Shown: positions 43,257-62,563, counted from the first letter of the stretch. The stretch is DNA of 64,000 nucleotides from Obrimoposthia wandeli (GCA_977020255.1 CDROCS010000410.1:310001-374000); one strand, 5' to 3'. Numbers and translations: made by a program. The notes: a model not told the origin generated them from the letters alone.

Positions 43257-44237
43257 TTAACGTTTACTGTTTTTATTTTGGTACATCAACTGATCTGTCT
43301 GTTGAATCATCTCATCCAATAGTGTCATTTTTTCATGCTTAAACACACAATAACCATAACTAATCGACGTGCTGTCACTAATATCATATTTGGCTACCGA
43401 ACTACTGTAACAATCCAATATTCGCAATGATAAATTTTCTAAATGTTGCATATATTCATCCCCATCACAGAAAGACGTCATAATGATAAACTCATCGCCA
43501 CCAAGACGGGCAATAATGTCACTCTCGCGGCCACTTGCCTTAATCGCATCGGCAAGGATGATAATGCATTCGTCACCGATTTGATGCCCATGTTTATCAT
43601 TAACCCATTTCAAATGATCAATATCGAGATAAATAAAACCTATGGTTTGCTTTGAACGTCGCGCCTCTTTAATACGCTGTTCACCTAAAAAAGATAATCC
43701 GCGGCGGTTGTTAATACCTGTTAGCTCATCAGTTAATGCTAAGTCGCGAATATCTTGATAATCACGTAGCATCTTTAAATCTGCGGCTATCAGTCGGCTA
43801 AACTGGGCAAGTAACTTAATTAATACCGACGAATGATTCGTGGCTTTGGTATCAATAACGCAAATGGTGCCGAATAGTTCACCTGAAGGCCAAAATATCG
43901 GTAAGCCACAATAAGAACGTACTTTGCCTTCGAGTACTGCAGGCGAATATTTCCAATAGTTATCCAACTTCGCTTGTTGAACATCCAGCCCTTTTTGGGT
44001 TTCTATAATACGCCGACAAAAACTATTCATATCCCATGGCCATGCGTCATTACAGGATAAAAAGTTATCTTCATTTTGGCTTGCAACGACAACATTAAAT
44101 TCATTTTGTCGAAATTGCACAATCGTCCCACATGCAGAATCAAACAATTCAGAAATTAAATCTGCAATCTCCTGCCACTTATTTAAGTCGATAATGTTTT
44201 GTTGAGAGCGAGATAAACAAGCCTGATAATCCAGCAT
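43257..44237 (-). CDS. GAF-GGDEF diguanylate cyclase
   Basis: GAF (YCGLPIFWPSGELFGTICVID); DELTGINNRR, RESD I-site, GGDEF. Confidence 0.9.
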   Translation of the reverse strand: MLDYQACLSRSQQNIIDLNKWQEIADLISELFDSACGTIVQFRQNEFNVVVASQNEDNFLSCNDAWPWDMNSFCRRIIETQKGLDVQQAKLDNYWKYSPAVLEGKVRSYCGLPIFWPSGELFGTICVIDTKATNHSSVLIKLLAQFSRLIAADLKMLRDYQDIRDLALTDELTGINNRRGLSFLGEQRIKEARRSKQTIGFIYLDIDHLKWVNDKHGHQIGDECIIILADAIKASGRESDIIARLGGDEFIIMTSFCDGDEYMQHLENLSLRILDCYSSSVAKYDISDSTSISYGYCVFKHEKMTLLDEMIQQTDQLMYQNKNSKR

Positions 44238-44435: not shown

Positions 44436-45533
44436 ATGTTTGATGCCATTAAAGGGTTCATCAACCCAAGTAAAAACCCTGATATATCCAAAGCCTTCGA
44501 ATATCAAAATACGCATTTGCCAACATTATGGTTACTGGGTAAAACAGGCGCAGGAAAATCATCACTGATCCAAGCAGTGACAGGCGATAGTGATGTGGAA
44601 ATTGGCAATGGATTCGAACCTTGTACCATGACATCACATGCTTATAGTTACCCGAAAGCAACGCCCCTACTCCGCTTTCTTGATACACGCGGTTTATCTG
44701 AAGCTGATTATGACCCTGCAGAGGATATCCAGATCAGCGCGCAACAAGGCCACGCCTTACTCATCATTGCTAAAGCCGAAGAACCAGAACAACGAGATGT
44801 TATCAACGCACTCACAAAAATAAAAAAACAAGGTTCAATCAAGCAAATTTTAGTCGTACACACGGCGGTAAAACAGCTGAGCTTAGATGAACAAAACAAA
44901 ACGGTGCAATACAACCAACAGCAATTTGAAAAGACATGGGGAAGCAAAATAGCCCATGTTGAAGTCGACTTTGAACTTGCTAATGGTGAGATGTTTGGCA
45001 TACCAGCACTAACAGAAAAGTTGATTGAACTATTACCTATCATCCAACAGTTTAATCATGACCAACAACATGCCGACACTGAAGGCGCCAACTTTCAAAA
45101 ACTAAAAACTGAAATACTCTGGTATGCGGGGTCTGCTGGTGCTGCCGATGCCATTCCTGCCGTTGGTCTTGTCGCGGTACCAAGTATTCAAGCCAAAATG
45201 CTCCACAGTTTGGCAAATCAGTACGGTGTCGATTGGGATAAACAAGCCTTTGCTGAATTTATAGGAACATTAGGATCTGGCTTTGCCTTTCAATACGCAT
45301 CTAAGCTCGGTATTCGCCAATTAGTTAAACTCATTCCCGCTTATGGGCAAACCATAGGTAGTGCATCTGCCGCAGTGATTAGCTTTGCATCCACCTATGC
45401 TATTGGTCGCGCAGCTTGTAAATACATGTATCACAAGAGTAAAGGCGAGACAGTCTCGAATCAAGATATGCAGGACGTATACAAAGATGCATTAGCAAAT
45501 ATTAAAGAGGTAGCAAAAAGTGAAACGCGTTAA
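44436..45533 (+). CDS. P-loop GTPase with C-terminal DUF697/YcjF-like helical domain
   Basis: G1 GKTGAGKS, G3 DTRG; C-terminal AGAADAIPAVGLVAVPSIQAKML. Confidence 0.8.
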   Translation: MFDAIKGFINPSKNPDISKAFEYQNTHLPTLWLLGKTGAGKSSLIQAVTGDSDVEIGNGFEPCTMTSHAYSYPKATPLLRFLDTRGLSEADYDPAEDIQISAQQGHALLIIAKAEEPEQRDVINALTKIKKQGSIKQILVVHTAVKQLSLDEQNKTVQYNQQQFEKTWGSKIAHVEVDFELANGEMFGIPALTEKLIELLPIIQQFNHDQQHADTEGANFQKLKTEILWYAGSAGAADAIPAVGLVAVPSIQAKMLHSLANQYGVDWDKQAFAEFIGTLGSGFAFQYASKLGIRQLVKLIPAYGQTIGSASAAVISFASTYAIGRAACKYMYHKSKGETVSNQDMQDVYKDALANIKEVAKSETR

Positions 45534-47061
45534 AAACAGCTTAACCCAATTAGACAAGCTTTCAAGTGGCGTCACCGCCGTGCTTACTTTGGCCATATTG
45601 TTACCGATATTAGTACTGTGTGGCTTTGGTTTATACGCCATTATCCAATATGGTTATACCCTACACTTTGCCATTGCACTGGTTGCTAGTTTTTTCCTTT
45701 TCTACATACCCTTGTTATGGTTACGCCGTAAAGCCAACATTAAAGTAGCGACATTACCTGAGAATAAAGACAGTCTCGTTCAAGCCTCTGGCGACTGGTC
45801 CGACGCTGAAAATGCCATTTGGCAACGCCTTAATGAAAACATTGAAGCACAATTATCCGAAGATGATGCATGGGGTTCATTAAAAAGCCACGGTTTAGTT
45901 ATTGCCAACGCGACAGCACAAGCATTCTCACGTGGTGATCTGCAATTCTCGGTCACTGACGGTTTAAAGCTACTGGAAGAAGTCAGCAGACGTTACCGTG
46001 CAACCCTCAAAGACAACGTGCCTTTTGTTGAAAGCATTAAAGTCTCACACCTCAAGTTTATTTTTGACCATCAAGACAAAATAGAAACTGGTAAACAAGC
46101 GGCGGACTTACTCAGTAAAGCTTATCGAGTCTATCAATTTATCAACCCCATTGCGGCTGTCACGAAGGAAGTGCGTAACAAGTTGCTCGGCGATATTGCT
46201 GGTAACGTCGGCGATAATTTACAACTCAATATGAAACGGGCATTTTTGCAAGAAGTCGCTGCCGTCTCTATTGATTTATACAGTGGCCGCTTTTCGATTG
46301 AAGACCAAGACATTAAGAAAAGTACTATCGCAGTGGAAGATGAGCAAAGTGAACCTAAGCCACTAGAACCCTTACGCATTGCCGTTATCGGGCAAATTAG
46401 CGCAGGTAAATCATCGCTGATAAATACCATTAAAGGCGCGCTTGACGCAGAAGTAAGTGCACTGCCCTCAACCAATGCTGTGAATGTTTACAGCTGCGCA
46501 ATTGGGGATATAGAAGTGCTAAACTTGGTTGATTTACCGGGACTCGATGGTGATGAAAAAACCAATAAAACAGTACTCAAACATGTGACAAATGCAGACA
46601 TGGTGCTGTGGGTATTAAAAGCCAACCAATCATCACGCCAACTTGATCGCCAATTCATGCTCAGCTTAGAAGAGTTTTACGCGCACAAGGATAACTTACA
46701 CCGTAAGAAGCCTGTAATTACCGGTATTCTAAATCAAGTTGATAAGTTAAAACCGTTAGCTGAATGGTCGCCCCCTTATGATTTAAATCAGTCTGATTCA
46801 CCCAAAGTTGATACCATCAATAAAGCCATTGAGTACAATCAAAAACTGCTCAATTTGGATAATATCATCCCAACATCGTTTTCTAGCGAATCACAGGTCT
46901 GGGGGCTTGAAAGCTTAGAGCAACTGATTACCACTAATGTCGATGAAAGTATCAATGTGCAACGTAATCGACAACGCTTAGAAAGTGGCAATACTAGCGC
47001 ATCGGCACAATTTAAGCGGGTCTTCAGCGGGGGTAAAAGCCTGTTTAAGAATATGATCTAG
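45520..47061 (+). CDS. Membrane-anchored P-loop GTPase (N-terminal TM pair, C-terminal G domain)
   Basis: Two TM helices; G1 GQISAGKS, G3 DLPG, G4 NQVD; GTG start overlaps the upstream gene. Confidence 0.8.
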   Translation: MKRVKNSLTQLDKLSSGVTAVLTLAILLPILVLCGFGLYAIIQYGYTLHFAIALVASFFLFYIPLLWLRRKANIKVATLPENKDSLVQASGDWSDAENAIWQRLNENIEAQLSEDDAWGSLKSHGLVIANATAQAFSRGDLQFSVTDGLKLLEEVSRRYRATLKDNVPFVESIKVSHLKFIFDHQDKIETGKQAADLLSKAYRVYQFINPIAAVTKEVRNKLLGDIAGNVGDNLQLNMKRAFLQEVAAVSIDLYSGRFSIEDQDIKKSTIAVEDEQSEPKPLEPLRIAVIGQISAGKSSLINTIKGALDAEVSALPSTNAVNVYSCAIGDIEVLNLVDLPGLDGDEKTNKTVLKHVTNADMVLWVLKANQSSRQLDRQFMLSLEEFYAHKDNLHRKKPVITGILNQVDKLKPLAEWSPPYDLNQSDSPKVDTINKAIEYNQKLLNLDNIIPTSFSSESQVWGLESLEQLITTNVDESINVQRNRQRLESGNTSASAQFKRVFSGGKSLFKNMI

Positions 47062-47145: not shown

Positions 47146-49023
47146 CTAGCTTACTGGCACAGCAGCTGAGACCAATTCAAGATGCGCCAAAAATTGCTGT
47201 TTATTCATTTCTCCGACAACCCGCAATTGTTGCAACTCCTGACCATCGGCATCAAAGAACAACATACTTGGCGGACCAAATAATTTAGCTTTTGCCATCC
47301 ACTCCGATTGCGCAGTGGTATTATCGGTAATATCAAACTTCATTGCATTAATGCCTGTCATTTTAGCGACAACTTCTGCATGCGAAAATACCTGCTTATC
47401 CATCACTTTGCATGATGTACACCAGTCTGCGTACAGATCCACCATAGTCACCGCTTTAAGCGCAGGTAAGTTATTAATTGCAGTTTCAATTTTAGTTACC
47501 GATGCTGTTTTCATAAATAACGGTTGTGAACCTTGTTCGGTACCTTTATTCATCACACCACGTTGGGTAATATGTTGCAGCGGATCGGCTAGATCATCAG
47601 CCCCCGTCACCACGCCAATCATAAGCATCGCGCCATAAACCAAGGACACGAACACCACCACATGACGTAACCACAATCGGCTTACTTGTATATCCGTCAT
47701 GTTATGAATGTACATCGCGCAACTGATTATCAACAGCGCCCATAATCCAAGTGTCACCGACGGTGCTGCAAAGCGGCTAATAAGTAAAATAGCAATCGCT
47801 AATAACATCACGCCAAAACCTTGTTTAACGCGGATCATCCAAGGGCCACTACGCGGTAAGAATTTCCCGCCTGATGTACCTATAATAACTAGAGGTACGC
47901 CCATGCCTAACGCCATTACAAATAATACACCACCACCGAATAGCCAGTCCTGAGTGGTTGATACATATAATAATGCCCCCGCTAAAGGTGCAGATACACA
48001 AGGTGAAACAACCAGAGCCGAGATCGCGCCCATCATGAACACGGTAAATACCTTCCCGCCAGATAAGCGTTGTGATTGATTATTTAACGCCACCTGTAAT
48101 CGAGACGGTAATTGCAGTTCATAAACCCCAAACATAGCTAAAGCAAGTAAGACAAACAGTCCAGCAAAAATCACCAATAACCAAGTCTGTTGCATCGCAG
48201 CTTGGATATTAATACCTTGACCCACAGTCGCCATCAGCACGCCAATCATGGCATAGCTCGATGCCATGCCAAGCACATACGCTAACGAAATATAGAAACC
48301 TTTCCACCCCGTCATGCCATCGCCTTGGCCGCCAATAATACTCGATAAAATCGGGATCATCGGCAACACACAAGGCGTAAATGCAAGCCCTAAACCAAGA
48401 ACGAAGAATAACAATAATGCTTGAGCACGCCCGGTACCAGCGAGCATGCTAGCCAAACCTTGACTGTCGTTCGCCGTATCAACAGCCGCGACCGACGCGC
48501 TATTTGATGCGGGCATGACTATGGAAGTGGCCTCAATCGCACTCACATTAATCGTCTTACGTTGTGGTAAATAACATAAACCACTATCAGCACACCCCTG
48601 ATAACTAACCTTCACACTGCCGCTGCCTGTGAAAGGTAACGTGACCGTTAACGCTTGATGATAAACTTTAACCAAGCCAAAGTTAGGATCCTGTTTCTGC
48701 TCTGCAACCACCGAAAATTGCGGCTTAGCTAAACTAATATCGCCATCAAGCTCATCATTAATAGCTTTAAACGAAAATCGTTTATGGTAAAGGTAATAAC
48801 CCGCTTGAGTCGCAAAGTTAAGCACCAGTTTATCGCCATCACTCGACCGTAATATTTCAGACGTGAATGGAAATGCCTCGTTTACCGTTAAAAATTTGGC
48901 CTGTGCATTACTGCTCGCTTGCGCCCAGGTTGATACGCAGATACTAATAATTAACATCAGGAAAATAATGCACTGCACTGCAGCCTTATTTGTCTGTAGT
49001 GATGTTTTTAAAAATGACTTCAT
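47146..49023 (-). CDS. dsbD: Thiol:disulfide interchange protein DsbD
   Basis: N-domain YQGCADSGLCYLP; TM FTPCVLPM and SPCVSAPL; C-terminal thioredoxin WCTSC. Confidence 0.93.
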   Translation of the reverse strand: MKSFLKTSLQTNKAAVQCIIFLMLIISICVSTWAQASSNAQAKFLTVNEAFPFTSEILRSSDGDKLVLNFATQAGYYLYHKRFSFKAINDELDGDISLAKPQFSVVAEQKQDPNFGLVKVYHQALTVTLPFTGSGSVKVSYQGCADSGLCYLPQRKTINVSAIEATSIVMPASNSASVAAVDTANDSQGLASMLAGTGRAQALLLFFVLGLGLAFTPCVLPMIPILSSIIGGQGDGMTGWKGFYISLAYVLGMASSYAMIGVLMATVGQGINIQAAMQQTWLLVIFAGLFVLLALAMFGVYELQLPSRLQVALNNQSQRLSGGKVFTVFMMGAISALVVSPCVSAPLAGALLYVSTTQDWLFGGGVLFVMALGMGVPLVIIGTSGGKFLPRSGPWMIRVKQGFGVMLLAIAILLISRFAAPSVTLGLWALLIISCAMYIHNMTDIQVSRLWLRHVVVFVSLVYGAMLMIGVVTGADDLADPLQHITQRGVMNKGTEQGSQPLFMKTASVTKIETAINNLPALKAVTMVDLYADWCTSCKVMDKQVFSHAEVVAKMTGINAMKFDITDNTTAQSEWMAKAKLFGPPSMLFFDADGQELQQLRVVGEMNKQQFLAHLELVSAAVPVS

Positions 49024-49895
49024 AGTAATAAAAAATCCGTATTTTGGTGAACGTTTAATTGTTCATCTACAAGTGCAAAACCAATCTCTTCAGGAACGGC
49101 TAAGCGAGGGTTAATTGTTAATGCGGTACTCATGATCCCAGCTTGTAAAGCCGTGTTCGCGACAACGGTTACCGAGATAACCTGTTTATGGGTATCCTGC
49201 GAAGCTAGTATGTGCGAGCTGTCATGATCAGAAAACTGCTCTCGCCTTGCATAGTGTGCCGACGTAGTCAGCGCTTGATTACGCAACGGTAAAGCAAACA
49301 ACGCTTGCGCTTGGTCATAAGGGTTTACGACTCCAACAATGAAATCATCACCATCTGCTTTATGACCTGCAACGCGAATATCACCACCAAAGTTAATCAA
49401 CACACCACTGCTTGAGGCTGATGCCATCGCTAACGCTTGATCAACAGCTACTTCTTTAATCACACCGCCAAGGTCTAACTGAGTAAGTGGAAAATGTAAG
49501 AGTAAGCAATCATCTTCAATCTCCCATGCGCTCAACCCCATATAAGGTGCCGCATCTTGATATATTTGCTCTCGAGTTAACGTACTGCGCTGTAATAATG
49601 CTTTCACGGTGCCAACGGTAATATCAAAAATACCCTGCGTTAAAGCACTGTAATCTCGCACCTTAATTAAAATATCACGAGTTTCAGCATCGACCATGAC
49701 ACGCTTACTCTCTCGCTGATTGATCAAGGTAGTCAGCATTGACATAGCAGAATAGAAATTAAACTTATCTTCCAGGCGCTTGGTATTCGCTTCAATATCA
49801 AGCGCAAGTTGCGCAGCATTTTCGGAAACCAAAGTCACTTCACAAGGCACTGTCATCGCCATAAAATGGTGCGTATAAGATTTTTTAGTAGTCAT
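49020..49895 (-). CDS. apbE: FAD:protein FMN transferase ApbE (no signal peptide)
   Basis: FDITVG, LDLGGVIKEVAVD, INFGGDI, TTSAHYAR. Confidence 0.85.
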   Translation of the reverse strand: MTTKKSYTHHFMAMTVPCEVTLVSENAAQLALDIEANTKRLEDKFNFYSAMSMLTTLINQRESKRVMVDAETRDILIKVRDYSALTQGIFDITVGTVKALLQRSTLTREQIYQDAAPYMGLSAWEIEDDCLLLHFPLTQLDLGGVIKEVAVDQALAMASASSSGVLINFGGDIRVAGHKADGDDFIVGVVNPYDQAQALFALPLRNQALTTSAHYARREQFSDHDSSHILASQDTHKQVISVTVVANTALQAGIMSTALTINPRLAVPEEIGFALVDEQLNVHQNTDFLLL

Positions 49896-51105
49896 AAGTC
49901 ACTCCCACTGCCCACCATTTGCTAGCATAACCATTACTTTGTTCGTAATAAGCGGCCAATGCATTCATGCGCCATTTAGACGACAACTTAATACTTGCAC
50001 CCAGTTCATAGGCATTGGCATTAAAATCACCTAAACGAATATCCGATGTGGCATAGCCTGTTGACGCAAATGTTGGATCTGCTGCTTTAGGGTCAATAAA
50101 GAAGCTAGCCCCTTGTTGTGTGTACCAAAAATAACCTGGCGCAAACGTTAACCAGTCAGTCACTTTGACACTCATCTTACCGCCAAGTTGATGTGACATA
50201 ACGCCCCAATCATCAGTAAAGAATTTATAACGAGGACGAACAACAACGCTGTCGCTAACGCTATAGAATGTTTGCACGTTTACGCCACCAGAAATACGAG
50301 TATCAGGGCGTGAATCTTGGCCTAAAAACACCTCATCATCACCAATCGAGCCATCACCATTAATATCGACTTCACGCAGTACAGTTAAATAATGATTACT
50401 TAAATAACCCGTTTTATAACCGCCATAAGCCGTAAACGTGGCATATAGATTAGGCGTGAATACCTGTGACATCCCCACTTCCATCGTCGAGGTAAAAATA
50501 TCTTCCCATGCTTGGGCATTCCCCCCATTTTGATATTCTTGGAATGCCAAAGTCTGATCAGTCAATACCGAACCACCAACACTAAACGAACGGTTTTTAG
50601 TACTGTCGGTATAAAACAGTGCTTTTGCATTCGCCCCCATGCTTTTGTAATCTTCCTCTTGTGAGTAGTTTACGCCTGCAGTCCATTCATCACGGTCTTT
50701 ATCACGATAAGTCACATTGGTTGATGCTGAATAACGGGTATCCTCGAGTTCAACAGGACGAATTTCATAATTTCCACGGTAAGGGTCATAACCTGCGCGG
50801 ATAACTTCCGACGTATTATTTTGGGCGTCTTGCGTTCGTTTGTCTGCGACGATACCAGAAGAAGGTGTCGTTGGAACCCAAGCTGGAGATGCGCCAGATA
50901 CTGTGTCGTAGCCCAACTCAGCCGTGATCGTCCAATCTAAACCAATATTTGTCTCCAATGATAAAATATTGTCTCCGGCTTTTACTTTATCGCCATACTC
51001 TTCAAAGTTCATATGGTGGATCGAGATATGATCTGCAGCAGAAACGGAACCAGCAACTAGGCCAAGTAGGGTTAATGGTAATTTTATATTCATTATATTA
51101 TTCAT
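49885..51105 (-). CDS. DUF3570-like outer-membrane beta-barrel protein with flavinylation motif
   Basis: Signal peptide; DTVSGAS motif; SQEEDY, PDTR, YKFFTDDWGVMSH, SDIRLG; aromatic C-terminus. Confidence 0.75.
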   Translation of the reverse strand: MNNIMNIKLPLTLLGLVAGSVSAADHISIHHMNFEEYGDKVKAGDNILSLETNIGLDWTITAELGYDTVSGASPAWVPTTPSSGIVADKRTQDAQNNTSEVIRAGYDPYRGNYEIRPVELEDTRYSASTNVTYRDKDRDEWTAGVNYSQEEDYKSMGANAKALFYTDSTKNRSFSVGGSVLTDQTLAFQEYQNGGNAQAWEDIFTSTMEVGMSQVFTPNLYATFTAYGGYKTGYLSNHYLTVLREVDINGDGSIGDDEVFLGQDSRPDTRISGGVNVQTFYSVSDSVVVRPRYKFFTDDWGVMSHQLGGKMSVKVTDWLTFAPGYFWYTQQGASFFIDPKAADPTFASTGYATSDIRLGDFNANAYELGASIKLSSKWRMNALAAYYEQSNGYASKWWAVGVTYDY

Positions 51106-51195
51106 CTTTAATTAGTTAAAACAGTGATTTAAAAGAAACACCTATAAACCACTCTCAATAAAATAAACTCAACTTACAGTCTTCAGTGTGGACCG

Positions 51196-51846
51196 CTAGT
51201 TACAGCCACAACCACCGCCACCAACGCCATTACCGCCAATAGAACCCTGTTTATAAGCAAATACTTTCTCGGAAAAAACATCAAATTCAGGCACCTCTCC
51301 TCCTGGTTTCATGGCCTTTTTCGCCAACGTACCTTTTTGCCAGGGCTTAACTGGTTTCACACTAAACCAATCACTTATCGCAGAGAACAATGACGATTCT
51401 TCCAGCTCTTCACTTTCTTCTTGGTGGGCTAATGCGCGGGTATTTAAAATGGGATTCACCGGTATCGTTGTAGGCATAAGCGGAGATGTGACCGATAACG
51501 GTACTAATACGGGTACTAATACAGGTACTGCAACGGGTAACGCGGCAGTATCAACGCCTGCACCAAGCCTTGGCGTTATCTTTAGCGGTAAAGGATGAAC
51601 AGTTCCTACTTGTTTGGTTTTAGCTTCCAACTTAACAACTGATTCCGTTATCACTACTTTAGGTTTATTGTGAAAAGGCTTAATCGTCACAGGTACCACC
51701 GATGGTTCGACGGTCGCTACCGCTTTATCGCCTTGGTAAACAACGCGAGAAACCGACTCGGCCATGTGAACAACTTCTGCTTGCAGGCTAAAGCTAGCGA
51801 GAAACACCACCGAAGATAACAAGGTTAAAAGAGAATAATGCTTCAT
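51196..51846 (-). CDS. DUF4266-like secreted protein with long Pro/Val-rich N-terminal region
   Basis: Signal peptide; C-terminal VKPWQKGTLAKKAM...YKQGSIGGNGVGGGGCGCN. Confidence 0.75.
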   Translation of the reverse strand: MKHYSLLTLLSSVVFLASFSLQAEVVHMAESVSRVVYQGDKAVATVEPSVVPVTIKPFHNKPKVVITESVVKLEAKTKQVGTVHPLPLKITPRLGAGVDTAALPVAVPVLVPVLVPLSVTSPLMPTTIPVNPILNTRALAHQEESEELEESSLFSAISDWFSVKPVKPWQKGTLAKKAMKPGGEVPEFDVFSEKVFAYKQGSIGGNGVGGGGCGCN

Positions 51847-52307
51847 TGACTTAATCCCATCGCTTTTAGGTCACTCATCACGACGTCACCGATATGGTTA
51901 ATCGCACCATAACGTACCTTAAGTACTTGCCCTTGATAAACGTAATACAAAGCAGGCATACCAATCGGTTGAAAGTCATCAACTAATGTTTGTTCATCGT
52001 CATTTACGACCCTGAAATTGAGCCCAAGAGATTGTTGAAATGCAATCCCTACAGCCATATCCTCATCAACATCAACGCCGACTACATCAACCCCTAATGC
52101 ACTCAATTCGGGGGTAAGTTCATTCACTTCCGGTAATTCCGCACGACAAGAAACACACCATTCGGCAAAAAAATCAATCAGCGATACACGGTTTGGATCT
52201 AACCCTAATTGCGCCTGTGCAGATGCTGATAGCATCTCACCTTCTTGATAAGCATGTGCTTGGCTAGACAATAATAATGTGAACACCACAAGCCATTTTT
52301 TAAACAT
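51843..52307 (-). CDS. TlpA-family periplasmic thioredoxin
   Basis: Signal peptide; FFAEWCVSC; GMPALY cis-Pro motif. Confidence 0.88.
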   Translation of the reverse strand: MFKKWLVVFTLLLSSQAHAYQEGEMLSASAQAQLGLDPNRVSLIDFFAEWCVSCRAELPEVNELTPELSALGVDVVGVDVDEDMAVGIAFQQSLGLNFRVVNDDEQTLVDDFQPIGMPALYYVYQGQVLKVRYGAINHIGDVVMSDLKAMGLSQ

Positions 52308-52354: not shown

Positions 52355-53566
52355 CTACTGACCCAACACGAGCCTAGGCTTCGATTCAACCTTAAGTGCC
52401 GTCTCAAAATAATCAGCTAGATCGGCACTATCTTTAGCATCAAACACCGCACCAAGACCGCCTGCGCATTGTTGAAATTGCTTAATACGATTAGCCGATA
52501 CACCAAAACCGATAAAACTCACTTCAATGTTTAAGTTTTGTTGGATTTCGTCACACAAGCCCGCGTTCATTAAGTCATCAAAGTACCGACCTCCTCCGTT
52601 ATCAGACCCATCGGTAAACAAAATTAATCGTTGAGTTAGTGACGAAGACGTCACAGGGGTAATCTTCCACGCCTGCTGCCATTTTTCAGTAAGCGTTCTA
52701 ACGCCCCAAATCAAGCCTTGATAAGATGCGGTAGTACCACTGGTACTTAAGCTGTTAACATACTTAATCACGTTATTGAGATCGTTGGTAAGTGGTAAAA
52801 TAAATGCCGTCTGACTACAACGATCCAACCAAGGTCCAGGTGTAACTTCTTTGAAATCTAGGCTCTTGGGTGACGAATTTAACGACCTCACGGTTTTATC
52901 AGCATCAAAATTACTACCGCGATAGGCCAAACCATCAACACATTTAGGGCTTGCTTTAGAGTTCGCTAACCAAGGTGCTGCCATCACCCCTACTCCGGTT
53001 TGAAAAGGCACAATAGAAAAGCGAACTTGATTATTACTCGGGTCAATGTCGCTTATCACATCGGTAATGATTCTTTTTAATTCAGGTAAATCCGATCCCA
53101 TCGAACCTGAAATATCCAGAACGAGTGAAAAATCAGTCGGATTTTGAATAACATTCGCAACATTCTCCATTAATTTGGCGCTAGAACCGCTGTTTGATGT
53201 AACTAAGCTTGAACTGTTAACTTCAACTGGCAGTAATTTGTTCATTGCCGGTTTAAAACTATATTGCACTGATATATTGCAACCCTTGTCACCATCCAAG
53301 CTGACACTATTACCAAGCGCAGGCAGCACAAAATTAGGGCGGTAATAATCTAAAATACCGTCAATAACGGTTCGCTCATCACTTTGCTGATACCCGCAGG
53401 CAAGCCCTGCGGCTTCAGCAGCTTGACCCGTTCTAATCACAACTTGGCTGTACATCGAAAACCCCGCCGTCCGTAAGCTGCTAAAGCTCATAATCATGGG
53501 TAACATAAAACGTAGAATGTAGGTGCGCTTCTTACTTTTTCCACGTTGACGTGATATGGACATCAT
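52355..53566 (-). CDS. tadG: TadG-like vWA-domain pilus protein
   Basis: RQRG prepilin-like N-terminus; MIDAS DISGS, GTTASYQG, LFTDG; position at the end of the tad locus. Confidence 0.8.
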   Translation of the reverse strand: MMSISRQRGKSKKRTYILRFMLPMIMSFSSLRTAGFSMYSQVVIRTGQAAEAAGLACGYQQSDERTVIDGILDYYRPNFVLPALGNSVSLDGDKGCNISVQYSFKPAMNKLLPVEVNSSSLVTSNSGSSAKLMENVANVIQNPTDFSLVLDISGSMGSDLPELKRIITDVISDIDPSNNQVRFSIVPFQTGVGVMAAPWLANSKASPKCVDGLAYRGSNFDADKTVRSLNSSPKSLDFKEVTPGPWLDRCSQTAFILPLTNDLNNVIKYVNSLSTSGTTASYQGLIWGVRTLTEKWQQAWKITPVTSSSLTQRLILFTDGSDNGGGRYFDDLMNAGLCDEIQQNLNIEVSFIGFGVSANRIKQFQQCAGGLGAVFDAKDSADLADYFETALKVESKPRLVLGQ

Positions 53567-54177
53567 ATTTTACGCCCTATTAATAACGCCGAGCTTTGAT
53601 AATAACGGTCACTGAAGTTACGTATAAATAAAGGGGTAATACCATTACCAAAGCTCTCGATACCCTTAATACACAAAGTGACTTGAAATAGTTCAGCCTG
53701 CTGTCCAGCATTTATGCCGGGCTTTGTACCTAGCGGTGATAAATCCTTTAATAATGATAATGGCGTAGCCGCAGTGCATTCAGCCCCGACATTTATAGGA
53801 CCCGGTTGGGCAGTTAAAGGATCAAAGACTAATTGTTCAAGGTGGAGTCCAATATCAACTGACGACTTGACAATTAAATCGTTGAAATGCCGCTGTGCAA
53901 CTTGTAATAACTCATCCGCTAATTGCGTCGAAATGATAGGTTGAGTAGCAGGACTTGAAGCTGGTTTATTCATGCCATTATCACATTTAGCACAAACTAC
54001 AATTGATGTCAGTGAATAAGCTAACGCATTAAGTTGGTTCTTGTGGTTGATCCCTTGGTTTATCTTTAAAACAAATAACACCAGAATAACCATTACTAAT
54101 GTAATGATAGGGAATTCGATGACAATACTGCCACGCTGAACAGCATGCGGTCTGCGTTTAGTTCGCATAACTAGCAC
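53563..54177 (-). CDS. tadF: TadF-like pseudopilin
   Basis: QRG-SIVIEF prepilin motif followed by a TM helix. Confidence 0.75.
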   Translation of the reverse strand: MLVMRTKRRPHAVQRGSIVIEFPIITLVMVILVLFVLKINQGINHKNQLNALAYSLTSIVVCAKCDNGMNKPASSPATQPIISTQLADELLQVAQRHFNDLIVKSSVDIGLHLEQLVFDPLTAQPGPINVGAECTAATPLSLLKDLSPLGTKPGINAGQQAELFQVTLCIKGIESFGNGITPLFIRNFSDRYYQSSALLIGRKI

Positions 54178-54628
54178 TCCGCTCTACAGTCACTAACGTC
54201 GTGCGTTTAAAGTTGGATAAACGCTCAAAACTATCAGAAAACCCTGCAACAAATAGCGCTTTATACGGATACAACAAGGTAAACTCAGCGAAGTCTTGCC
54301 CATCAAAACTGGTTACAAAATCATCATTTTCTAATGCAACCAAACTGGTAAAATAATGAGTTTGAACAGTGATTTTGTTACCATTCAATAATGGTAATTG
54401 TTGTTCTGACAGGGTTAATTGTAATTTGGCGGTTAAATCTTCACGCGAACTATCAACCACTAACTCTCGCGTTGCTGAAGCTAAGGCAACATCAAGCATA
54501 CTGCTCACCATCATAAAGCGGCTAATTTCGATAAGCCCCAACAGCAATACAAAAAATGGCACAATCGTCACTGCAAATTCAATGCTAACGCCACCTTGCT
54601 GTCTATTTCTCATGTTAGACAGAATCAT
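54158..54628 (-). CDS. tadE: TadE-like pseudopilin
   Basis: QQG-GVSIEFA, TM helix, IEISR..LDVALASATR. Confidence 0.85.
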   Translation of the reverse strand: MILSNMRNRQQGGVSIEFAVTIVPFFVLLLGLIEISRFMMVSSMLDVALASATRELVVDSSREDLTAKLQLTLSEQQLPLLNGNKITVQTHYFTSLVALENDDFVTSFDGQDFAEFTLLYPYKALFVAGFSDSFERLSNFKRTTLVTVERSASYAN

Positions 54629-55434
54629 TGTTTAACCTGCTCTGTCAATAATGACCCTTGCTGTGATTGGCCTTGATAAAGCTGCTGATAATAAGCAAGA
54701 TTATTTTCTAATTCAGCTTTAGTTAGATCTTGTTTTGCAATTGTTTCTGCAGCTTCAACATCGCCCTTCATAGCAAAAGCTAAGGCCAAATTCTGACGGC
54801 TTTTAGACGTCGAGCTACCACGTAAGTAATGTGAATAAAGCACACCGATACCTTGCTGTGGTTGCCCATCTAGAATCCAAGCGAGTGCTAAATTATTACG
54901 GTATTCTAAATTGTCTGGCGCATTAGCAAGCGCACCTGTGAACGCGATTCTTGCTTGAGGGTAGTCCTTAAATAATGCGTAATTAATGCCTAAACTGTTT
55001 AATGCTTTAGCATCGTTAGGTAATAATTCAGCCGCTTTTTTTAAATCTAAAATAGCGCCCTCTAAGTTACCTAAACCTTGCTGTGCATTGCCTCGTTCAC
55101 GTAATATTTGACCACGTATCACAGATGACTTATTGGTCTCAATTAGCATCAACGCCTGTGCTTGATTAAGATAATACAGTGCTAAATCAAATTCAGACAT
55201 TTTGTTGTAAGCAGTCCCTATCGCTAACAACAGGTCGGTATCGTTTGGGTGCAAATCGAGTTGCTTACGATAAATAGAGATCGCACTGTCTGGTCGGCCA
55301 CTATCAAGTGCCAACTTTGCTAGATCACGATCCGAGTGCATTTCTTCGGTCTGGCTTAATTGATTAGTACTACAACCAGATAAAATAAGTAAGCCAAACA
55401 TAATAAACACTTTCACCAGTGATTTTTTCATCAC
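54625..55434 (-). CDS. tadD: TadD TPR lipoprotein (pilotin)
   Basis: Lipobox LSGC; TPR repeats; NNLAL..RQNLALAFA..NLAYY. Confidence 0.85.
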   Translation of the reverse strand: MMKKSLVKVFIMFGLLILSGCSTNQLSQTEEMHSDRDLAKLALDSGRPDSAISIYRKQLDLHPNDTDLLLAIGTAYNKMSEFDLALYYLNQAQALMLIETNKSSVIRGQILRERGNAQQGLGNLEGAILDLKKAAELLPNDAKALNSLGINYALFKDYPQARIAFTGALANAPDNLEYRNNLALAWILDGQPQQGIGVLYSHYLRGSSTSKSRQNLALAFAMKGDVEAAETIAKQDLTKAELENNLAYYQQLYQGQSQQGSLLTEQVKQ

Positions 55435-56327
55435 ATACCTCCAAGGCTATCTAATAATGCGATGATCGTAGGTGAAACAATCAGGACGACTACAGGCAAC
55501 ATGATTAATACCACCACAGGTAATGACATTTTCGCGGGGATCTTACCGACCCTCTCTTCTAGACGTAAATATTGATATTGACGGCTATCACTGGCGATTA
55601 AACGCATCGTTGGCGCTATCTTACTGCCATATTTTTCAGCTTGAGATAAGGCGATGACCATGTTTTCAACTTCCACTAATCCCGTTCTCTCCGCCAAGTT
55701 ATTTAATGCCGTAATACGAGAATCCAATAAACGTAACTCCGCTTCAGTGATTAACCACTCACGTGATAACTCGGGAGTAACAGTCGTCATTTCACGGCCA
55801 ACACGTTGAAATACGGCTTCCAAGGTTAAACCTGATTCAACACAAATAACCATTAAATCGAGCGCATCAGGCAGTGCTAGCGCAATACGGTAATTAACCG
55901 TGCGGGCACGCCATTTCAGCCATTGTTCAGCAACAAGTCCACCAGAAATAGCAAAGATCAAGGTCTTAGCCATGACAAATTTATCGGAATCAAAATCGAC
56001 ATACCACTGCCACGTCATCGCACTCGTCAGCATTAAGCTTACTTTGCACAATAAAAATATAGCGCTTGCTCTTGGGCCATGAAATCCAGCTTTAACCAAT
56101 AGTGCGCTAATATCAGGCGCGACAGTTAAACGGCGTAACCAGCCAATTTTTGACGCTGACTTACTTAAACCAAGGGACGAATATTGCTGTTGTGCCGATA
56201 CCGATGCTGATACCAACACTAATCGTTTTAATAGCTGCTCACGGCGCTGCGCTGGTGCACTAAATAACAGTGCTATAACCGCGCCAGTAATAAGCAAAGT
56301 AACGGCTATCCATAAAGATAAAGACAT
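55431..56327 (-). CDS. tadC: TadC inner-membrane platform protein
   Basis: LPDALDLMVICVESGLTLE, QAEKYG, KMSLPVV. Confidence 0.92.
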   Translation of the reverse strand: MSLSLWIAVTLLITGAVIALLFSAPAQRREQLLKRLVLVSASVSAQQQYSSLGLSKSASKIGWLRRLTVAPDISALLVKAGFHGPRASAIFLLCKVSLMLTSAMTWQWYVDFDSDKFVMAKTLIFAISGGLVAEQWLKWRARTVNYRIALALPDALDLMVICVESGLTLEAVFQRVGREMTTVTPELSREWLITEAELRLLDSRITALNNLAERTGLVEVENMVIALSQAEKYGSKIAPTMRLIASDSRQYQYLRLEERVGKIPAKMSLPVVVLIMLPVVVLIVSPTIIALLDSLGGM

Positions 56328-57259
56328 TAAGCTCTCACCTTCGTTAACAAATGAATAATAGCGAAACCAAGCGCCATACTGGTAACCACATAACCTAAGA
56401 CTAAATGTCCACTCGGGTTTTGAGTTAACGTAATAAATGCACTCGGATTTTTAAAAAACATCACCGAGATAAGAACTATCGGCAAACTTGCTAAAATAGC
56501 GGCTGTCATGCGCGGTTCTGCTGTTAAACTTCTGATCTTCATCTTAATAGCGGAGTTGTCATGCACTGTTCGACTCAAACTATGTAATACCTCACGCAGC
56601 TGACCACCATTCTCTTCGTTCAAAATTAATGCCACGCTAAAGAAATGAAAACTCACATAAGGCAAACGAATACGGGCCTGGTTTAGCGCTTGCTTTAGGC
56701 CTATACCAATCTCTAATTTATCGCGGATCAAACCAAACTCGCGACCCAATATCCCTTGTTGATAATCCGCTATTTGAGCGATAGCTTGCGGCACTGAAAT
56801 ACCTGCCGACACAGCCCGTGACATTTGACCTAATACTTGCGTGAAACCAGCATTAAATTCACTATGTTGACGCACAGTCATGATCCAATAGCTCACAGCC
56901 AACACCGAAAACATGATAATCGCAATAATCATCATTCTCATTGACGGCGTAAAAAAAGGTAACGTAAACCAGACAACAACAGCCAAAATAGCTAACAATA
57001 GTTGTATAAGACGCTTAGCTTTACGCCCAAATAAGGCGTCGACACGCGCTTTCAGATCGTGGCTATATTGCAATAAAGGGCTCGTTTTTTGCGCCCAATG
57101 AAATAAAGTTGATGTCGCTTTATTATCTGTACTGTTCACTGTTGATATCGAACTTAACCGACGCTTTAATACCTGTCGTTGACGCTGATGCTGTAAGGCT
57201 TTATAACTGCTAAATACAAACATAATCAATAACAACAGGCCTGTCACCATGACTGACAT
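56327..57259 (-). CDS. tadB: TadB inner-membrane platform protein
   Basis: RAVSAGIS, ENGGQLREVL, KIRSLTAEPRMTA. Confidence 0.9.
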   Translation of the reverse strand: MSVMVTGLLLLIMFVFSSYKALQHQRQRQVLKRRLSSISTVNSTDNKATSTLFHWAQKTSPLLQYSHDLKARVDALFGRKAKRLIQLLLAILAVVVWFTLPFFTPSMRMMIIAIIMFSVLAVSYWIMTVRQHSEFNAGFTQVLGQMSRAVSAGISVPQAIAQIADYQQGILGREFGLIRDKLEIGIGLKQALNQARIRLPYVSFHFFSVALILNEENGGQLREVLHSLSRTVHDNSAIKMKIRSLTAEPRMTAAILASLPIVLISVMFFKNPSAFITLTQNPSGHLVLGYVVTSMALGFAIIHLLTKVRA

Positions 57260-58614
57260 TATCGAACTCCCATGGCTTGTTTCAACTGAGATTCAAGTTG
57301 GTAGTAACGCGCCTTCTCACTAAAACGCGGCAATATTTTCGTGGATAGAAACTCCCCAACAAGATCACCGTTAACGTCCATTTGCTGATAATCAAAATGG
57401 AACAAATCATGAGTAAGGTATTGATCACCTTCAAGGCCGACGATTTCGGTAATATTAACCACTCGACGTTTACCGTCTCGCATACGTTCCACTTGTACAA
57501 CCACATCCAAAGTACTAGCGATTTGGCGGCGTAAAGCAGACACAGGTAAATTAACCTCTGCCATTAACAGCATGTTTTCTAAACGGATTAACGCATCGTG
57601 CGGTGTATTAGCATGCAGCGTTGACATAGAACCATCATGACCTGTATTCATCGCCTGCATCATATCAAACGCTTCAGCGCCACGGACTTCACCTAAAATA
57701 ATTCGATCAGGACGCATCCGTAATGCATTACGTAACAATTCTCGCTGACCAATGGCTGCAGCGCCTTCGACATTTGCAGGCCTTGTCTCAATACTCACCA
57801 CGTGTGGTTGCTGTAACTTTAATTCTGCGGCATCTTCAATCGTAATGATGCGTTCGTCGGGGGAAATACCAAACGACAATGCATTCAGTAATGTCGTTTT
57901 ACCTGCACCTGTACCACCTGAAATCAATACATTAACTCGGGAACGAGCAATAATATTTAGCACATCCGCCATCTCAGACGACATGGCTCCGAGCGCAGCA
58001 AGTTGCTGCAAGCTATGTTTTTGCTCATTAAATTTACGGATAGAAATACACGTACCATTTAATGCCAATGGTGGAATAAGCACATTCACACGACTGCCAT
58101 TGGGTAAACGCGCATCAACCATCGGCGTTGTTTCATCCACACGGCGACCGATACGGCTTACTATTCGGCGCGCTAAATTCAATACATGTTCTTCATCGCG
58201 AAAGCGAACATCAGCGCGCTTGACCTTACCGCGATACTCAACGAATACCTCGGTATGACCATTAACCATGATGTCTGTTATCTCAGGATCATCCATTAAC
58301 ACCTGTAAAGGCCCCAACCCCAACATTTCATCAACAAGGCGCTGGCTGATATTACGCTGCTCAGTCCCCCCAATTGGAAATTGCTGACGAGCAGCAATAT
58401 CACCGACGGCTTCAAACGTGCGAACTTCAAGTTCTTCAGGTGTCAGCGTGACAACGACAGCAGGAGCAATAATCGCCATTATCTCTTGCTGGATAACACG
58501 AAAACGTTGCTCTTCAACATTACTACTCGGTGTTACGTCCGCAGCATCTGCGGATACGGATAATGTCAGTAATGACTCCGTTGGCGTCGGTGTTACTGTA
58601 TTAGATCCAAACAT
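57259..58614 (-). CDS. tadA: TadA/CpaF pilus assembly ATPase
   Basis: GLGPL, SIRKF, Walker [38 protein letters not shown]. Confidence 0.96.
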
Positions 58615-59432
58615 TACGCCCCCTTACGCCAGCGAAACACACTCGGCTTTGATACTTTTGATTCACCACTAATAACAGCAACCAATTTTTTCAATGCTTT
58701 TGCACTGCGGCTTTTTTGATTAATAGCCAATAAACCGAGCGCATTACCGGTCCGCATATCCTCTGGAGAATACGGAATTTCAACATCCAATTTACGGTCC
58801 AAAGTCGCCGCGACATCATTAGCCGTAATTAAGGATTGTGCTGCGGGTTTCGTGTGATTAAGCACCACTATCGTGCGAGTATCTAATGAGCCTGTAGATG
58901 CTAACTTCGTCAATAATTGATTGCTACTGCGGATAGATGCTAATGTCGGTTCAACAATCACCACGCGAATATCACTGCGATTTAATGTTTCAAAGCCCAC
59001 TTTATCGCGTAAACAGAATGCAGGAATATCCCAAATAACATGGTTCGCTTGTTCTAGGCAAAAGTCAGACACTTTATCCATACTTGCAACATCAGGCCAA
59101 AAGTGCAGTTCAAAACCAGACGCATAACCGGTAAATAGGTATAAATCATCATTAACCTTAACCCCGCTACGTTGATAGATAACAGGCTCTAAGCGATCAG
59201 GGAATTGCAGCATTTCTAGCAATGCGTTATTCGCTTGTACACTGAATTGTAAGTCTAAATCACCGGTCAAAAAATCAAGGTCAGCACAAGCGACACTGGT
59301 CTGACTCAATTGAGATAAACCCCAAGCAATATTGGCGATTAACGAGGTTGTACCAGCGCCACCTTTGGCACTCACAACTGCGATCTTATTACGCTTTACA
59401 TGATCATTCGCGATTGGATTAGACGCTTGCAT
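58614..59432 (-). CDS. tadZ: TadZ/CpaE-like MinD-family ATPase
   Basis: Deviant Walker A SAKGGAGTTS, ADLD; no room for an N-terminal receiver domain. Confidence 0.8.
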   Translation of the reverse strand: MQASNPIANDHVKRNKIAVVSAKGGAGTTSLIANIAWGLSQLSQTSVACADLDFLTGDLDLQFSVQANNALLEMLQFPDRLEPVIYQRSGVKVNDDLYLFTGYASGFELHFWPDVASMDKVSDFCLEQANHVIWDIPAFCLRDKVGFETLNRSDIRVVIVEPTLASIRSSNQLLTKLASTGSLDTRTIVVLNHTKPAAQSLITANDVAATLDRKLDVEIPYSPEDMRTGNALGLLAINQKSRSAKALKKLVAVISGESKVSKPSVFRWRKGA

Positions 59433-59434
59433 TA

Positions 59435-60064
59435 TTACTGCCCTCCTAAGCTAGACGAAATACTACTGCTGTTATTTTTATCTGCTTGATCGCTATTGCT
59501 GGTCGTTGGCTGATAATAAGTATCCACTCTTGATACAGCTTTACGACCCTCTGTTGCATCGAGCGTACGCCCAATAGCAAGATCTCTTGGTGTTGCAACC
59601 ATTTGCGCTAAAGCACTCGCATTGGCGCAACCAAAGTTAGGGCTCGATTTAAATTCATTTAACACACTGTGTTTCTGCTTCCCTGCAGCACAATTCGCTA
59701 CTAGGCTACGATAAGATTCAACGAATAAGGCTACATCAGCTACCGTTGATGTTTCAGCTACTTCGCTTGTTACCTGAGATGGATACACACCGGCCTGTTT
59801 TAACAATGCCGTTAATGCAGGTACTGCACTCGCGCCTTTGCTGCTATAAGTGGCTATCTTTATCCGCAGTGCTGACGAATCACCTCTTTGATAAATAAAT
59901 TCATTCAACGCGGCCTGATCACTTTTTGATAATCCCTTTTGATCCAGCTGTAACGCTATTTTGTGCGTAACGGCTTCTACTTGAACTTCAGGTTGACGCT
60001 GCACAGAATCAATTGCACAAGCACTCAACAAACCACACATTATTAATATCGAAAATATCCGCAT
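59435..60064 (-). CDS. rcpB: RcpB/CpaD pilus lipoprotein
   Basis: Lipobox LSAC after ATG 60064; NFGCANASALAQMVATPRDL. Confidence 0.8.
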   Translation of the reverse strand: MRIFSILIMCGLLSACAIDSVQRQPEVQVEAVTHKIALQLDQKGLSKSDQAALNEFIYQRGDSSALRIKIATYSSKGASAVPALTALLKQAGVYPSQVTSEVAETSTVADVALFVESYRSLVANCAAGKQKHSVLNEFKSSPNFGCANASALAQMVATPRDLAIGRTLDATEGRKAVSRVDTYYQPTTSNSDQADKNNSSSISSSLGGQ

Positions 60065-60071
60065 AACTACC

Positions 60072-62383: not shown

Positions 62384-62563
62384 TTATTTATCAGCTTTAA
62401 CTGTATCCAGTTTCTCAATTACAGACTCATAGGTCTGCTCAATCGCATTCGAAAGCTTGCCGTCAGAACCAAAAAATTGCAGCATAATAAGTGACATAGC
62501 AGCCGCTAAAATTGCATATTCAATTGCCGCAGCACCACGTTGTTTTTGTTTGTTGTTTTTCAT
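62384..62563 (-). CDS. flp: Flp (type IVb/c) major pilin, 59 aa, absent from the ORF track
   Basis: Translated by hand: MKNNKQKQRG-AAAIEYAILAAAMSLIMLQFFGSDGKLSNAIEQTYESVIEKLDTVKADK; G cleavage site with E+5/Y+6. Confidence 0.92.
   Translation of the reverse strand: MKNNKQKQRGAAAIEYAILAAAMSLIMLQFFGSDGKLSNAIEQTYESVIEKLDTVKADK

Follow-up and report, generated by a model that had tools for sequence, protein, structure and literature searches.

A predicted thiol- and flavin-based relay with an outer-membrane barrel, encoded at the 3' end of a Tad pilus operon

The closest described relatives of the system treated here come from a comparative survey of flavinylation (Meheust 2021, eLife 10:e66878; PMC8238504). 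In that survey, 227 DsbD-linked gene clusters (its Fig. 4D) combine the flavin mononucleotide (FMN) transferase ApbE with a DUF3570 protein, a thioredoxin-like protein, and DUF4266, and a further 316 clusters contain the same four components without DsbD. We analyzed a cassette of these five families in a 64-kb stretch of DNA from Obrimoposthia wandeli (GCA_977020255.1 CDROCS010000410.1:310001-374000; G+C content, ~41%; no runs of N), referred to below as the window. The survey remarks on the C-terminal CXC of DUF4266 and proposes a hybrid thioredoxin/flavin system that runs from DsbD through the thioredoxin-like protein to DUF4266/DUF3570, with its function left open. The survey also includes an experiment in which the DUF3570 protein of Chlorobium luteolum was flavinylated by the neighboring ApbE at two [ST]GA[ST] serines; the protein was expressed without its signal peptide by cytoplasmic co-expression in E. 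coli and was found in the insoluble fraction/inclusion bodies. The word "barrel" does not occur in the text of the survey, "outer membrane" is used there only for TonB receptors, and neither pili nor Tad are mentioned. Outside that paper, we found no functional treatment of DUF3570 in the searchable literature.

The initial annotation of the window had stated that surveys of flavinylation had noted the gene combination. This was right, and the survey proposes the same DsbD-thioredoxin-flavin path; the state of knowledge was understated, since flavinylation of DUF3570 by its ApbE had already been shown experimentally. The system as a kind is thus published, and the window locus adds a variant. 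Our additions, all of them testable, are the barrel topology of the flavin site, a cytoplasmic-type ApbE subfamily, and a conserved placement of the cassette within Tad operons. This five-gene system occurs widely and is among the few flavinylation systems without an assigned function.

All five open reading frames proposed for the cassette are present on the minus strand (Table 1), co-oriented and mostly overlapping as had been claimed, and their family assignments are upheld by Pfam and NCBIfam, with every Pfam match exceeding the gathering score. Neighboring genes overlap by 4, 11, and 4 nucleotides (nt), and the single gap, between the DUF4266 and DUF3570 genes, is 90 nt. The cassette shares with the published DsbD-type clusters the same five families, the same order, and a DUF3570 protein with an ApbE acceptor motif. 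In contrast to those clusters, it ends a Tad operon, its DUF4266 protein is three times longer and is not a lipoprotein, and its DUF3570 protein contains an EF-hand loop. The published ApbE-associated DUF3570 proteins also carry two flavinylation motifs (in the C. luteolum test, both had to be mutated), while the window protein carries one. Our reading of the whole, which we hold tentatively and with slightly less than even confidence, is a relay from DsbD through the TlpA-like protein and a Cys-Gly-Cys tail to an FMN in an outer-membrane barrel, here in a variant that makes up the 3' end of a Tad operon.

That DUF3570 is an outer-membrane beta-barrel, as the initial annotation had it, is predicted with good support. 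The family match (PF12094; E value, 8e-79) covers profile positions 27 to 415 of 427, and the protein begins with a signal peptide at amino acids (aa) 1 to 23, MNNIMNIKLPLTLLGLVAGSVSA. An AlphaFold2 model built from a 150-sequence alignment has 16 long beta-strands (mean predicted local distance difference test score [pLDDT], 93.9; predicted template modeling score [pTM], 0.88), and its sole disordered part is the signal peptide. When this model was compared with the PDB by Foldseek, only outer-membrane barrels were retrieved (FadL, OmpG, TonB-dependent receptors, BcsC, and PelB), with the best TM-scores belonging to the 16-strand BcsC (0.53) and PelB (0.50). Because sequence identity to these matches is 7 to 11%, DUF3570 has no close solved relative. 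The chain ends in GVTYDY (49888-49905). The family comprises 2414 representatives at 50% clustering, and of 176 that were compared, 161 close with F, Y, or W. MtrCAB-type porin-cytochrome conduits share the concept of an outer-membrane barrel that houses a redox carrier fed from the periplasm; MtrB is found among the generic Foldseek matches (rank 50) and has no specific structural similarity to DUF3570. The window cassette lacks hemes and has flavin and thiol carriers in place of multiheme cytochromes; its 16-strand barrel is also smaller than that of MtrB, which has 26 strands.

The candidate flavin site, DTVSGAS, lies exactly where it was first placed (50887-50907) and corresponds to D67-T-V-S-G-A-S73 in strand 3 of the barrel. 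It fits the acceptor motif D-x-x-[ST]-G-A-[ST], in which the FMN goes on the last residue (PMC12052999). This motif occurs once in the window among stop-free stretches of at least 100 aa in six frames, and it arises in 147 of 20000 (0.7%) composition-preserving shuffles of DUF3570. D67, G71, and A72 are conserved at 90% or more in 150 DUF3570 representatives, down to ~20% identity; S73 is invariant in an 18-sequence alignment of the clade, and at least one [ST]GA[ST] is present in 166 of 176 representatives. Family members with two to four motifs carry the extra copies 11 to 22 residues past the first, in loop 2, and no second motif was found at this distance in the window protein. The sequence QQGAS (aa 330-334) was considered as a second site and rejected as unconserved (QQGAN in the closest relative).

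If both termini are taken to be periplasmic, as is standard for such barrels, the long loops of DUF3570 (aa 79-112, which holds a helix, 234-268, and 331-360) would all be extracellular. Strand 3 (aa 58-78) presents W58, I60, A62, L64, and Y66 to the lipid, and strand parity places D67 and S73 on the opposite, polar face, with S73 several residues past the Y66 girdle. Other family-conserved residues, R124, E150, R270, D298, and Q330 among them, are also located on polar faces of the barrel. From strand parity and the rule of periplasmic termini, we infer that an FMN on Ser73 would be turned toward the lumen, in the half of the barrel that lies on the extracellular side. As the barrel contains no cysteine and none of the cassette proteins has a heme motif, FMN would be the only possible redox center of the barrel. 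An EF-hand-like loop, DINGDGSIGDDE (aa 247-258; 50332-50367, minus strand), falls within the long, predicted extracellular loop 5. It is kept as D-x-[DN]-x-D-G-x-I-x-x-[DE]-E in Moritella, Photobacterium, Vibrio, and BD1-7, is degenerate in Colwellia and Pseudoalteromonas, and is absent from distant DUF3570 members. A flavin inside an outer-membrane barrel would provide a heme-free way to place a redox cofactor at the cell surface.

The ApbE protein of the window belongs to a subfamily that departs from canonical periplasmic ApbE/Ftp proteins (V. cholerae, E. coli, T. pallidum Ftp, and L. monocytogenes FmnB). Its ApbE domain is well matched (PF02424; E value, 2e-38; 133 bits against a cutoff of 25.6), and the protein matches solved ApbE/Ftp sequences (nine in one comparison and thirteen in another), but it does not reach the NCBIfam ApbE equivalog NF007774 (46 bits against a cutoff of 498). 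Shared with the canonical enzymes are the fold, the motifs FD-x-T-x-G, DLGG, and GGD, and the same acceptor motif. According to a 2025 review in the Journal of Biological Chemistry (PMC12052999), Ser241-His257-Asp285 forms the conserved catalytic center, and most ApbE proteins are lipoproteins. With the register fixed by alignment to solved structures, including the H257G mutant 6nxj, and in V. cholerae numbering, Ser241 and His257 are kept (S212, 49260-49262, and H228, 49212-49214, respectively), whereas the position of Asp285 is occupied by G253 (49137-49139). The window protein is also shorter (~290 versus ~340 aa), carries a cysteine in the first strand (C18, 49842-49844), and has K147-E148 (E148, 49452-49454) where canonical ApbE has Lys-Gly. 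G253, C18, and K147-E148 are invariant in all 121 sequences of the subfamily (277-319 aa, from a profile search). That Glu148 compensates for the absent Asp285 is speculation.

The initial annotation had assumed a periplasmic ApbE, which is at odds with the subfamily as a whole: its members have no export signal, and their catalytic center is altered. The window ApbE begins ~10 residues ahead of the first strand of the mature fold, MTTKKSYTHHFMAMTVPCEV. No export signal was found in any of the 45 clade loci with an adjacent ApbE, no signal peptide was found in five distant clusters (a metagenome contig, Oceanobacter, a Campylobacterota metagenome-assembled genome, L051, and L060), and a hydrophobic N-terminal h-region is present in 0 of the 121 subfamily members. 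A hidden signal or upstream start was rejected; the longest reading frame had been taken, and in distant loci, the in-frame sequence upstream amounts to 0 to 20 residues. Longer frames at some loci are unconserved, out-of-frame read-through of the DUF3570 3' end. Export of ApbE as a frameshift fusion to the barrel C terminus was likewise rejected, as the genes lie apart elsewhere: the spacing is 16 to 63 nt in Colwellia, Pseudoalteromonas, L050, L053, and L054, and a whole gene intervenes in the metagenomic cluster L060. The intervening gene (L060, 3597-5429) encodes a 610-aa protein without a Pfam match and sits between DUF3570 and ApbE-DsbD.

Because the ApbE subfamily lacks an export signal and its substrate has a Sec signal peptide, the simplest reading is that the window ApbE would act in the cytoplasm, attaching FMN to the unfolded DUF3570 precursor before Sec export. 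Such an order of events is consistent with the published reaction, which took place in the E. coli cytoplasm on inclusion-body protein. It is also consistent with Ser73 being buried once the barrel has folded and with flavin adenine dinucleotide (FAD) being a cytoplasmic metabolite. Export of pre-flavinylated DUF3570 by the Tat pathway was rejected, as the inspected signal peptides have no twin arginine. A cytosolic ApbE that serves a cytoplasmic substrate is described for Klebsiella (PMC12052999). The K. pneumoniae enzyme likewise lacks a signal peptide and flavinylates soluble fumarate reductase; its substrate remains in the cytoplasm, while that of the window ApbE has a Sec signal and is predicted to reach the outer membrane. 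The signal-less, Asp285-less character of the DUF3570-linked ApbE is apparently not discussed in the flavinylation survey. A signal-less transferase with an exported substrate would sidestep the question of how FAD reaches a periplasmic ApbE and, if true, would be the first case of a cofactor-bearing chain crossing Sec.

The DUF4266 protein ends in GGGGCGCN, and this is its true C terminus (51199-51222), as had been noted from the sequence. The family match (PF14086; E value, 8e-17) is confined to aa 166 to 216 (51199-51351). Outside the clade of the window, DUF4266 is a lipoprotein of ~70 aa (lipobox ...SGC), as in L050, L053, L054, and L060, an architecture that the window protein does not share. 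In the clade, DUF4266 has 121 to 253 aa, a type I signal peptide, and a variable linker; the window protein (216 aa) is such a long form, with a 140-residue variable, low-complexity linker ahead of the C-terminal domain. It has no cysteines other than C213 and C215. Conservation is high over the last 50 residues (VKPWQKGTLAK...GG.GVGGGGCGC[N/K]), and GGGCGC (G210-C215) is invariant and always terminal in 21 diverse aligned sequences; in all 21, and in four further proteins, the chain stops one residue past the second cysteine. When folded alone with an alignment, DUF4266 is mostly coil (mean pLDDT, 55), which suggests that a segment of it may become ordered only on a partner. We also observed that the long DUF4266 proteins of Moritella, Photobacterium, and Vibrio carry the motif E-[ES]-V-S-x-x-V-Y just past the signal peptide (in the window, aa 29-45, approximately 51700-51760; equivalents in L002-L039) and that RRNIELVKP is common to many Vibrio and Photobacterium members; neither is found in the short lipoprotein form.

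A mechanistic precedent for such a tail comes from Erv-family enzymes, in which shuttle disulfides, Cys-X-Cys on flexible tails, feed flavin sites (PMC3509050). The likeness to Erv/ALR sulfhydryl oxidases (e.g., Erv2p) is limited to a Cys-X-Cys on a flexible terminal segment that trades electrons with a flavin site, and the two systems are not homologous. In Erv enzymes, the tail and the flavin belong to one soluble dimer, the FAD is noncovalent, a second CxxC lies beside the flavin, and electron flow is oxidative. In the window, by contrast, the tail belongs to one protein and the flavin to another, the FMN is predicted to be covalent, and the barrel has no cysteine.

The proposed donors of the relay are the TlpA-like protein and DsbD. 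The TlpA-like protein has a signal peptide, the active site W-C51-V-S-C54 (CVSC at 52146-52157), and a TlpA/ResA/DsbE-like Redoxin/AhpC-TSA fold. It reaches no named NCBIfam equivalog, including the Bradyrhizobium-type TlpA equivalog NF047696 (33.6 bits against 230). DsbD is full length, with alpha, beta, and gamma domains (Pfam DsbD_N, DsbD_TM, and thioredoxin; NCBIfam NF001419, 565 bits against a cutoff of 330), and all of its cysteine pairs are present: C144/C150 (48574-48594), C218/C342 in two P-C-V membrane motifs, and C535-T-S-C538 (47410-47421). In Colwellia and Pseudoalteromonas, a gene for a protein of 220 to 300 aa replaces dsbD after apbE (L041, 10161-11045; L044, 10135-10848; L045, 10145-10813), with weak similarity to OMP_b-brl or DUF2490 in two of these three loci. 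A short CcdA/DsbD was rejected as the identity of this replacement, which also occurs in BD1-7; it has no DsbD_TM match and only weak barrel-like matches. At another locus (L058, 596-2727), a TetR regulator and an extra AhpC/TSA peroxiredoxin-like gene precede Redoxin, DUF4266 (199 aa), and DUF3570, which hints at an oxidative-stress context; no Tad genes were found there within the available 3 kb.

The relay that we propose would begin in the cytoplasm, where the signal-less ApbE would move FMN from FAD onto Ser73 of the unfolded DUF3570 precursor ahead of Sec. Once exported, DUF3570 is predicted to fold as a 16-strand outer-membrane barrel with the FMN in the lumen of its extracellular half, beneath long loops, one of them an EF-hand-type calcium loop. 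By family precedent, DsbD would take reducing equivalents from thioredoxin in the cytoplasm, deliver them to the periplasm, and reduce the CVSC of the TlpA-like protein, which in turn may reduce the disulfide of the terminal Cys-Gly-Cys in the glycine-rich, unstructured tail of DUF4266. This tail would enter the barrel from the periplasm and give two electrons to FMN, much as the CXC shuttle tail of Erv does, and the flavin would then reduce an acceptor at the cell surface. From these parts we infer the electron path, the acceptor, and the role of the pilus discussed below.

The five genes are not a free-standing unit, a point missing from the initial annotation: the cassette continues a complete Tad/Flp pilus operon, and the linkage is conserved. 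Upstream of the cassette and co-oriented with it lies a contiguous Tad block (52355-62328), which completes the full set from flp to tadG, and the tlpA-like gene begins 47 nt downstream of the tadG-like gene. The set matches that of Tad/Flp (type IVc) operons (flp, rcpC, secretin, cpaD, tadZ, and tadA-tadG), to which the window operon adds the thioredoxin/DUF4266/DUF3570/ApbE/DsbD module; we found no Tad operon with such a module described in the searchable literature. The Flp prepilin has a G/AAAIEY processing motif and no cysteine. From the spacing of the genes, co-transcription from flp to dsbD is likely.

We compared 49 related loci, among them those of Moritella, Photobacterium, Vibrio, BD1-7, Colwellia, Pseudoalteromonas, Bacterioplanoides, and Oleispira; the closest relatives are in Moritella (88 to 93% identity), followed by Photobacterium and Vibrio. 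In 45 of the 49 loci, the cassette is preceded by the Tad block, with tad-cassette junctions of -1 to ~100 nt. Two loci are too short to judge, and two Oleispira loci of the same clade are without a Tad block. In Bacterioplanes sanyensis (L059), tad is followed by thioredoxin, DUF4266 (121 aa), and DUF3570, and the rest of the cassette is absent. In a metagenomic lineage (L057), tadG overlaps the gene for DUF4266 (150 aa) by 4 nt and DUF3570 follows, with no TlpA, ApbE, or DsbD nearby. Both lineages retain the CGC tail and the single flavinylation motif. Because these two lineages lack other cassette genes, the Tad-linked unit is the DUF4266-DUF3570 pair, and it is the long DUF4266, not the lipoprotein, that accompanies the linkage. 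Also characteristic of the Tad-linked form are a single flavinylation site and the EF-hand loop.

Whether this linkage is functional or results from hitch-hiking on an island is, in our judgment, an evenly balanced question. In one rival reading, the core relay would be the same and the Tad adjacency would have no functional meaning, the cassette being carried on a horizontally transferred tad island and acting without regard to the pilus. We consider this unlikely, although mobility is known for tad loci ("widespread colonisation islands"), every Tad-linked locus found is from marine Gammaproteobacteria, and distant DUF3570 clusters, as well as the two Oleispira loci, lack Tad genes. The linkage nonetheless holds down to 32 to 37% DUF3570 identity and across several orders, with junctions of 0 to 100 nt and start/stop overlaps in Colwellia and L057. 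L057, moreover, keeps DUF4266 and DUF3570 on tadG although TlpA, ApbE, and DsbD are gone, and the Tad-linked forms share derived features (the long DUF4266 without a lipobox and the single flavinylation site). A plasmid-borne island was rejected, as the four "plasmid" matches are Vibrio replicons of 1.3 to 1.8 Mb.

If the linkage is functional, the DUF4266-DUF3570 pair may have been recruited in this clade as an accessory of the Tad pilus, and the beneficiary would therefore probably be tied to pilus-mediated attachment. TadG/CpaL-type pilin-vWA proteins have been modeled at the Tad pilus tip (PMC12607857). Four cysteines are conserved in the TadG-like protein and two in TadF, which is suggestive, yet ordinary for exported proteins. 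A stronger version, in which DUF4266-DUF3570 is a dedicated redox accessory of a Tad subtype, with a flavin installed in the cytoplasm, carried through Sec, and fed by thiols to give an attachment organelle a surface redox function, strikes us as doubtful. At the surface, the pair might sense the redox state of the substratum, reduce metals or disulfides at contact, or control the TadG/TadF tip. Because of the conserved fusion to tad, phenotypes can be sought for this orphan system (in pilus biogenesis, adhesion, and biofilm), and the Vibrio species that carry it are candidate experimental hosts.

Several points weigh against the pilus-linked relay described above. The predicted placement of Ser73 in the lumen and the extracellular half derives from strand parity together with the usual topology rule for barrels, and flavinylation of DUF3570 was shown for the C. 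luteolum orthologue. The ApbE subfamily is without the Asp285 of the Ser-His-Asp center, and the experimentally active C. luteolum ApbE may fall outside this subfamily. To our knowledge, Sec export of a flavinylated chain has no precedent. As for the pilus, the distant clusters with short lipoproteins (L050, L053, L054, and L060) have no Tad genes, so the core function does not need a pilus, and a mobile island on which both were inherited together could account for the Tad link. Scans of the window for consensus promoters and terminators gave fewer matches than expected from shuffles and so carry no information on co-transcription with tad. An Rfam search of the window returned no match, so no riboswitch or regulatory RNA was seen.

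The same genes could instead serve metal handling, although we consider this rather improbable. The Cys-Gly-Cys of DUF4266 would then be a site for Cu(I), Fe, or another thiophilic metal that the TlpA-like protein keeps reduced, a service TlpA performs for copper-site proteins, and the FMN barrel would act as an assimilatory or detoxifying metal reductase and as the route of the metal. Two thiolates on a flexible glycine tail would suit this role. In Oceanobacter mangrovi (L053, 12398-15077), a response regulator, a histidine kinase, and a gene for DUF411, which we take to be a copper-resistance-associated family, come after the cassette, with DsbD divergently transcribed; this neighborhood hints at metal-responsive control. 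In addition, 25 DUF3570 clusters contain the ferrous-iron transporter VIT1 (PMC8238504). However, no genes for metal transporters, chaperones, or regulators lie beside the cassette in the window and the 49 clade loci, conserved charged residues line the inside of the barrel, which has no obvious open pore, and the Tad linkage would be left unexplained.

Reversed flow, which we regard as very unlikely, would make the system an outer-membrane thiol oxidase that passes electrons from periplasmic or pilus thiols through Cys-Gly-Cys and FMN to oxygen or another external oxidant, with DsbD and TlpA serving only to reset it; it would form or isomerize disulfides in the Tad tip proteins. The nearest mechanistic analogue, the Erv shuttle disulfides, does run in the oxidizing direction, and the cysteines of the TadG-like VWA protein and of TadF would be at hand as substrates. 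These conserved pairs are, however, those of ordinary DsbA clients in exported proteins, and many clusters have no Tad genes. We know of no characterized case in which DsbD and TlpA-type proteins do other than supply reductant, as they would in the relay favored here. Finally, the idea that the terminal GCGC is a processing or lipidation signal (as in MYXO-CTERM, which often carries GCGC, or CXC prenylation) and DUF4266 a structural plug or tether of the barrel is barely credible even though JDVT-CTERM proteins sometimes occur beside DUF4266/DUF3570/TlpA genes (bioRxiv 10.1101/2023.06.07.544157), because in MYXO/JDVT-CTERM signals the cysteine must be followed by a transmembrane helix and an Arg cluster while DUF4266 ends one residue past its second cysteine, no CPBP/Rce1-type protease is found among the Pfam-annotated genes flanking the cassettes examined, and the constant CxxC thioredoxin partner, often with DsbD, points to redox chemistry.

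Table 1. Genes of the Tad operon and of the cassette that ends it, listed from flp to dsbD
Gene or product	Coordinates	Strand	Basis
flp, Flp/Fap prepilin, 59 aa, first gene of operon	62384-62563	minus	PF04964, 33.8 bits against a cutoff of 32.2
RcpC/CpaB	61462-62328	minus	Pfam
Secretin	60072-61484	minus	Pfam
CpaD	59435-60133	minus	Pfam
TadZ-like ParA ATPase	58614-59432	minus	Pfam
TadA	57259-58614	minus	Pfam
TadB	56327-57259	minus	Pfam
TadC	55431-56327	minus	Pfam
TPR (TadD-like)	54625-55434	minus	Pfam
TadE	54158-54628	minus	Pfam
TadF	53563-54177	minus	Pfam
TadG-like VWA protein	52355-53566	minus	Pfam
TlpA-like gene, 154 aa	51843-52307	minus	Open reading frame, Pfam
DUF4266 gene, 216 aa	51196-51846	minus	Open reading frame, Pfam
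DUF3570 gene, 406 aa	49885-51105	minus	Open reading frame, Pfam
ApbE gene, 291 aa	49020-49895	minus	Open reading frame, Pfam
DsbD gene, 625 aa, last of cassette	47146-49023	minus	Open reading frame, Pfam

Just upstream of flp, on the minus strand (62676-63869), lies a gene for a 397-aa protein with an Lcl_C domain (Legionella collagen-like adhesin C-terminal domain). In Colwellia and Pseudoalteromonas, genes for giant proteins (1110 to 2038 aa) that share a region with this Lcl_C protein lie immediately downstream of the cassette, on the other strand (L041, 11196-15845; L044, 10982-17098; L045, 10938-14270; L046, 11236-16509). The Lcl_C-type proteins may be adhesins that travel with the island.

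On its other side, dsbD faces a convergent gene that ends at 47061. This gene is part of a pair of overlapping GTPase genes on the plus strand (44436-47061), of which one encodes a 365-aa protein with MMR_HSR1 and DUF697 and the other a 513-aa, dynamin-like MMR_HSR1 protein with N-terminal membrane helices. A GGDEF protein gene (43257-44237) comes after the GTPase pair, and this GTPase/GGDEF arrangement beside the cassette is kept only in Moritella (L001-L003).

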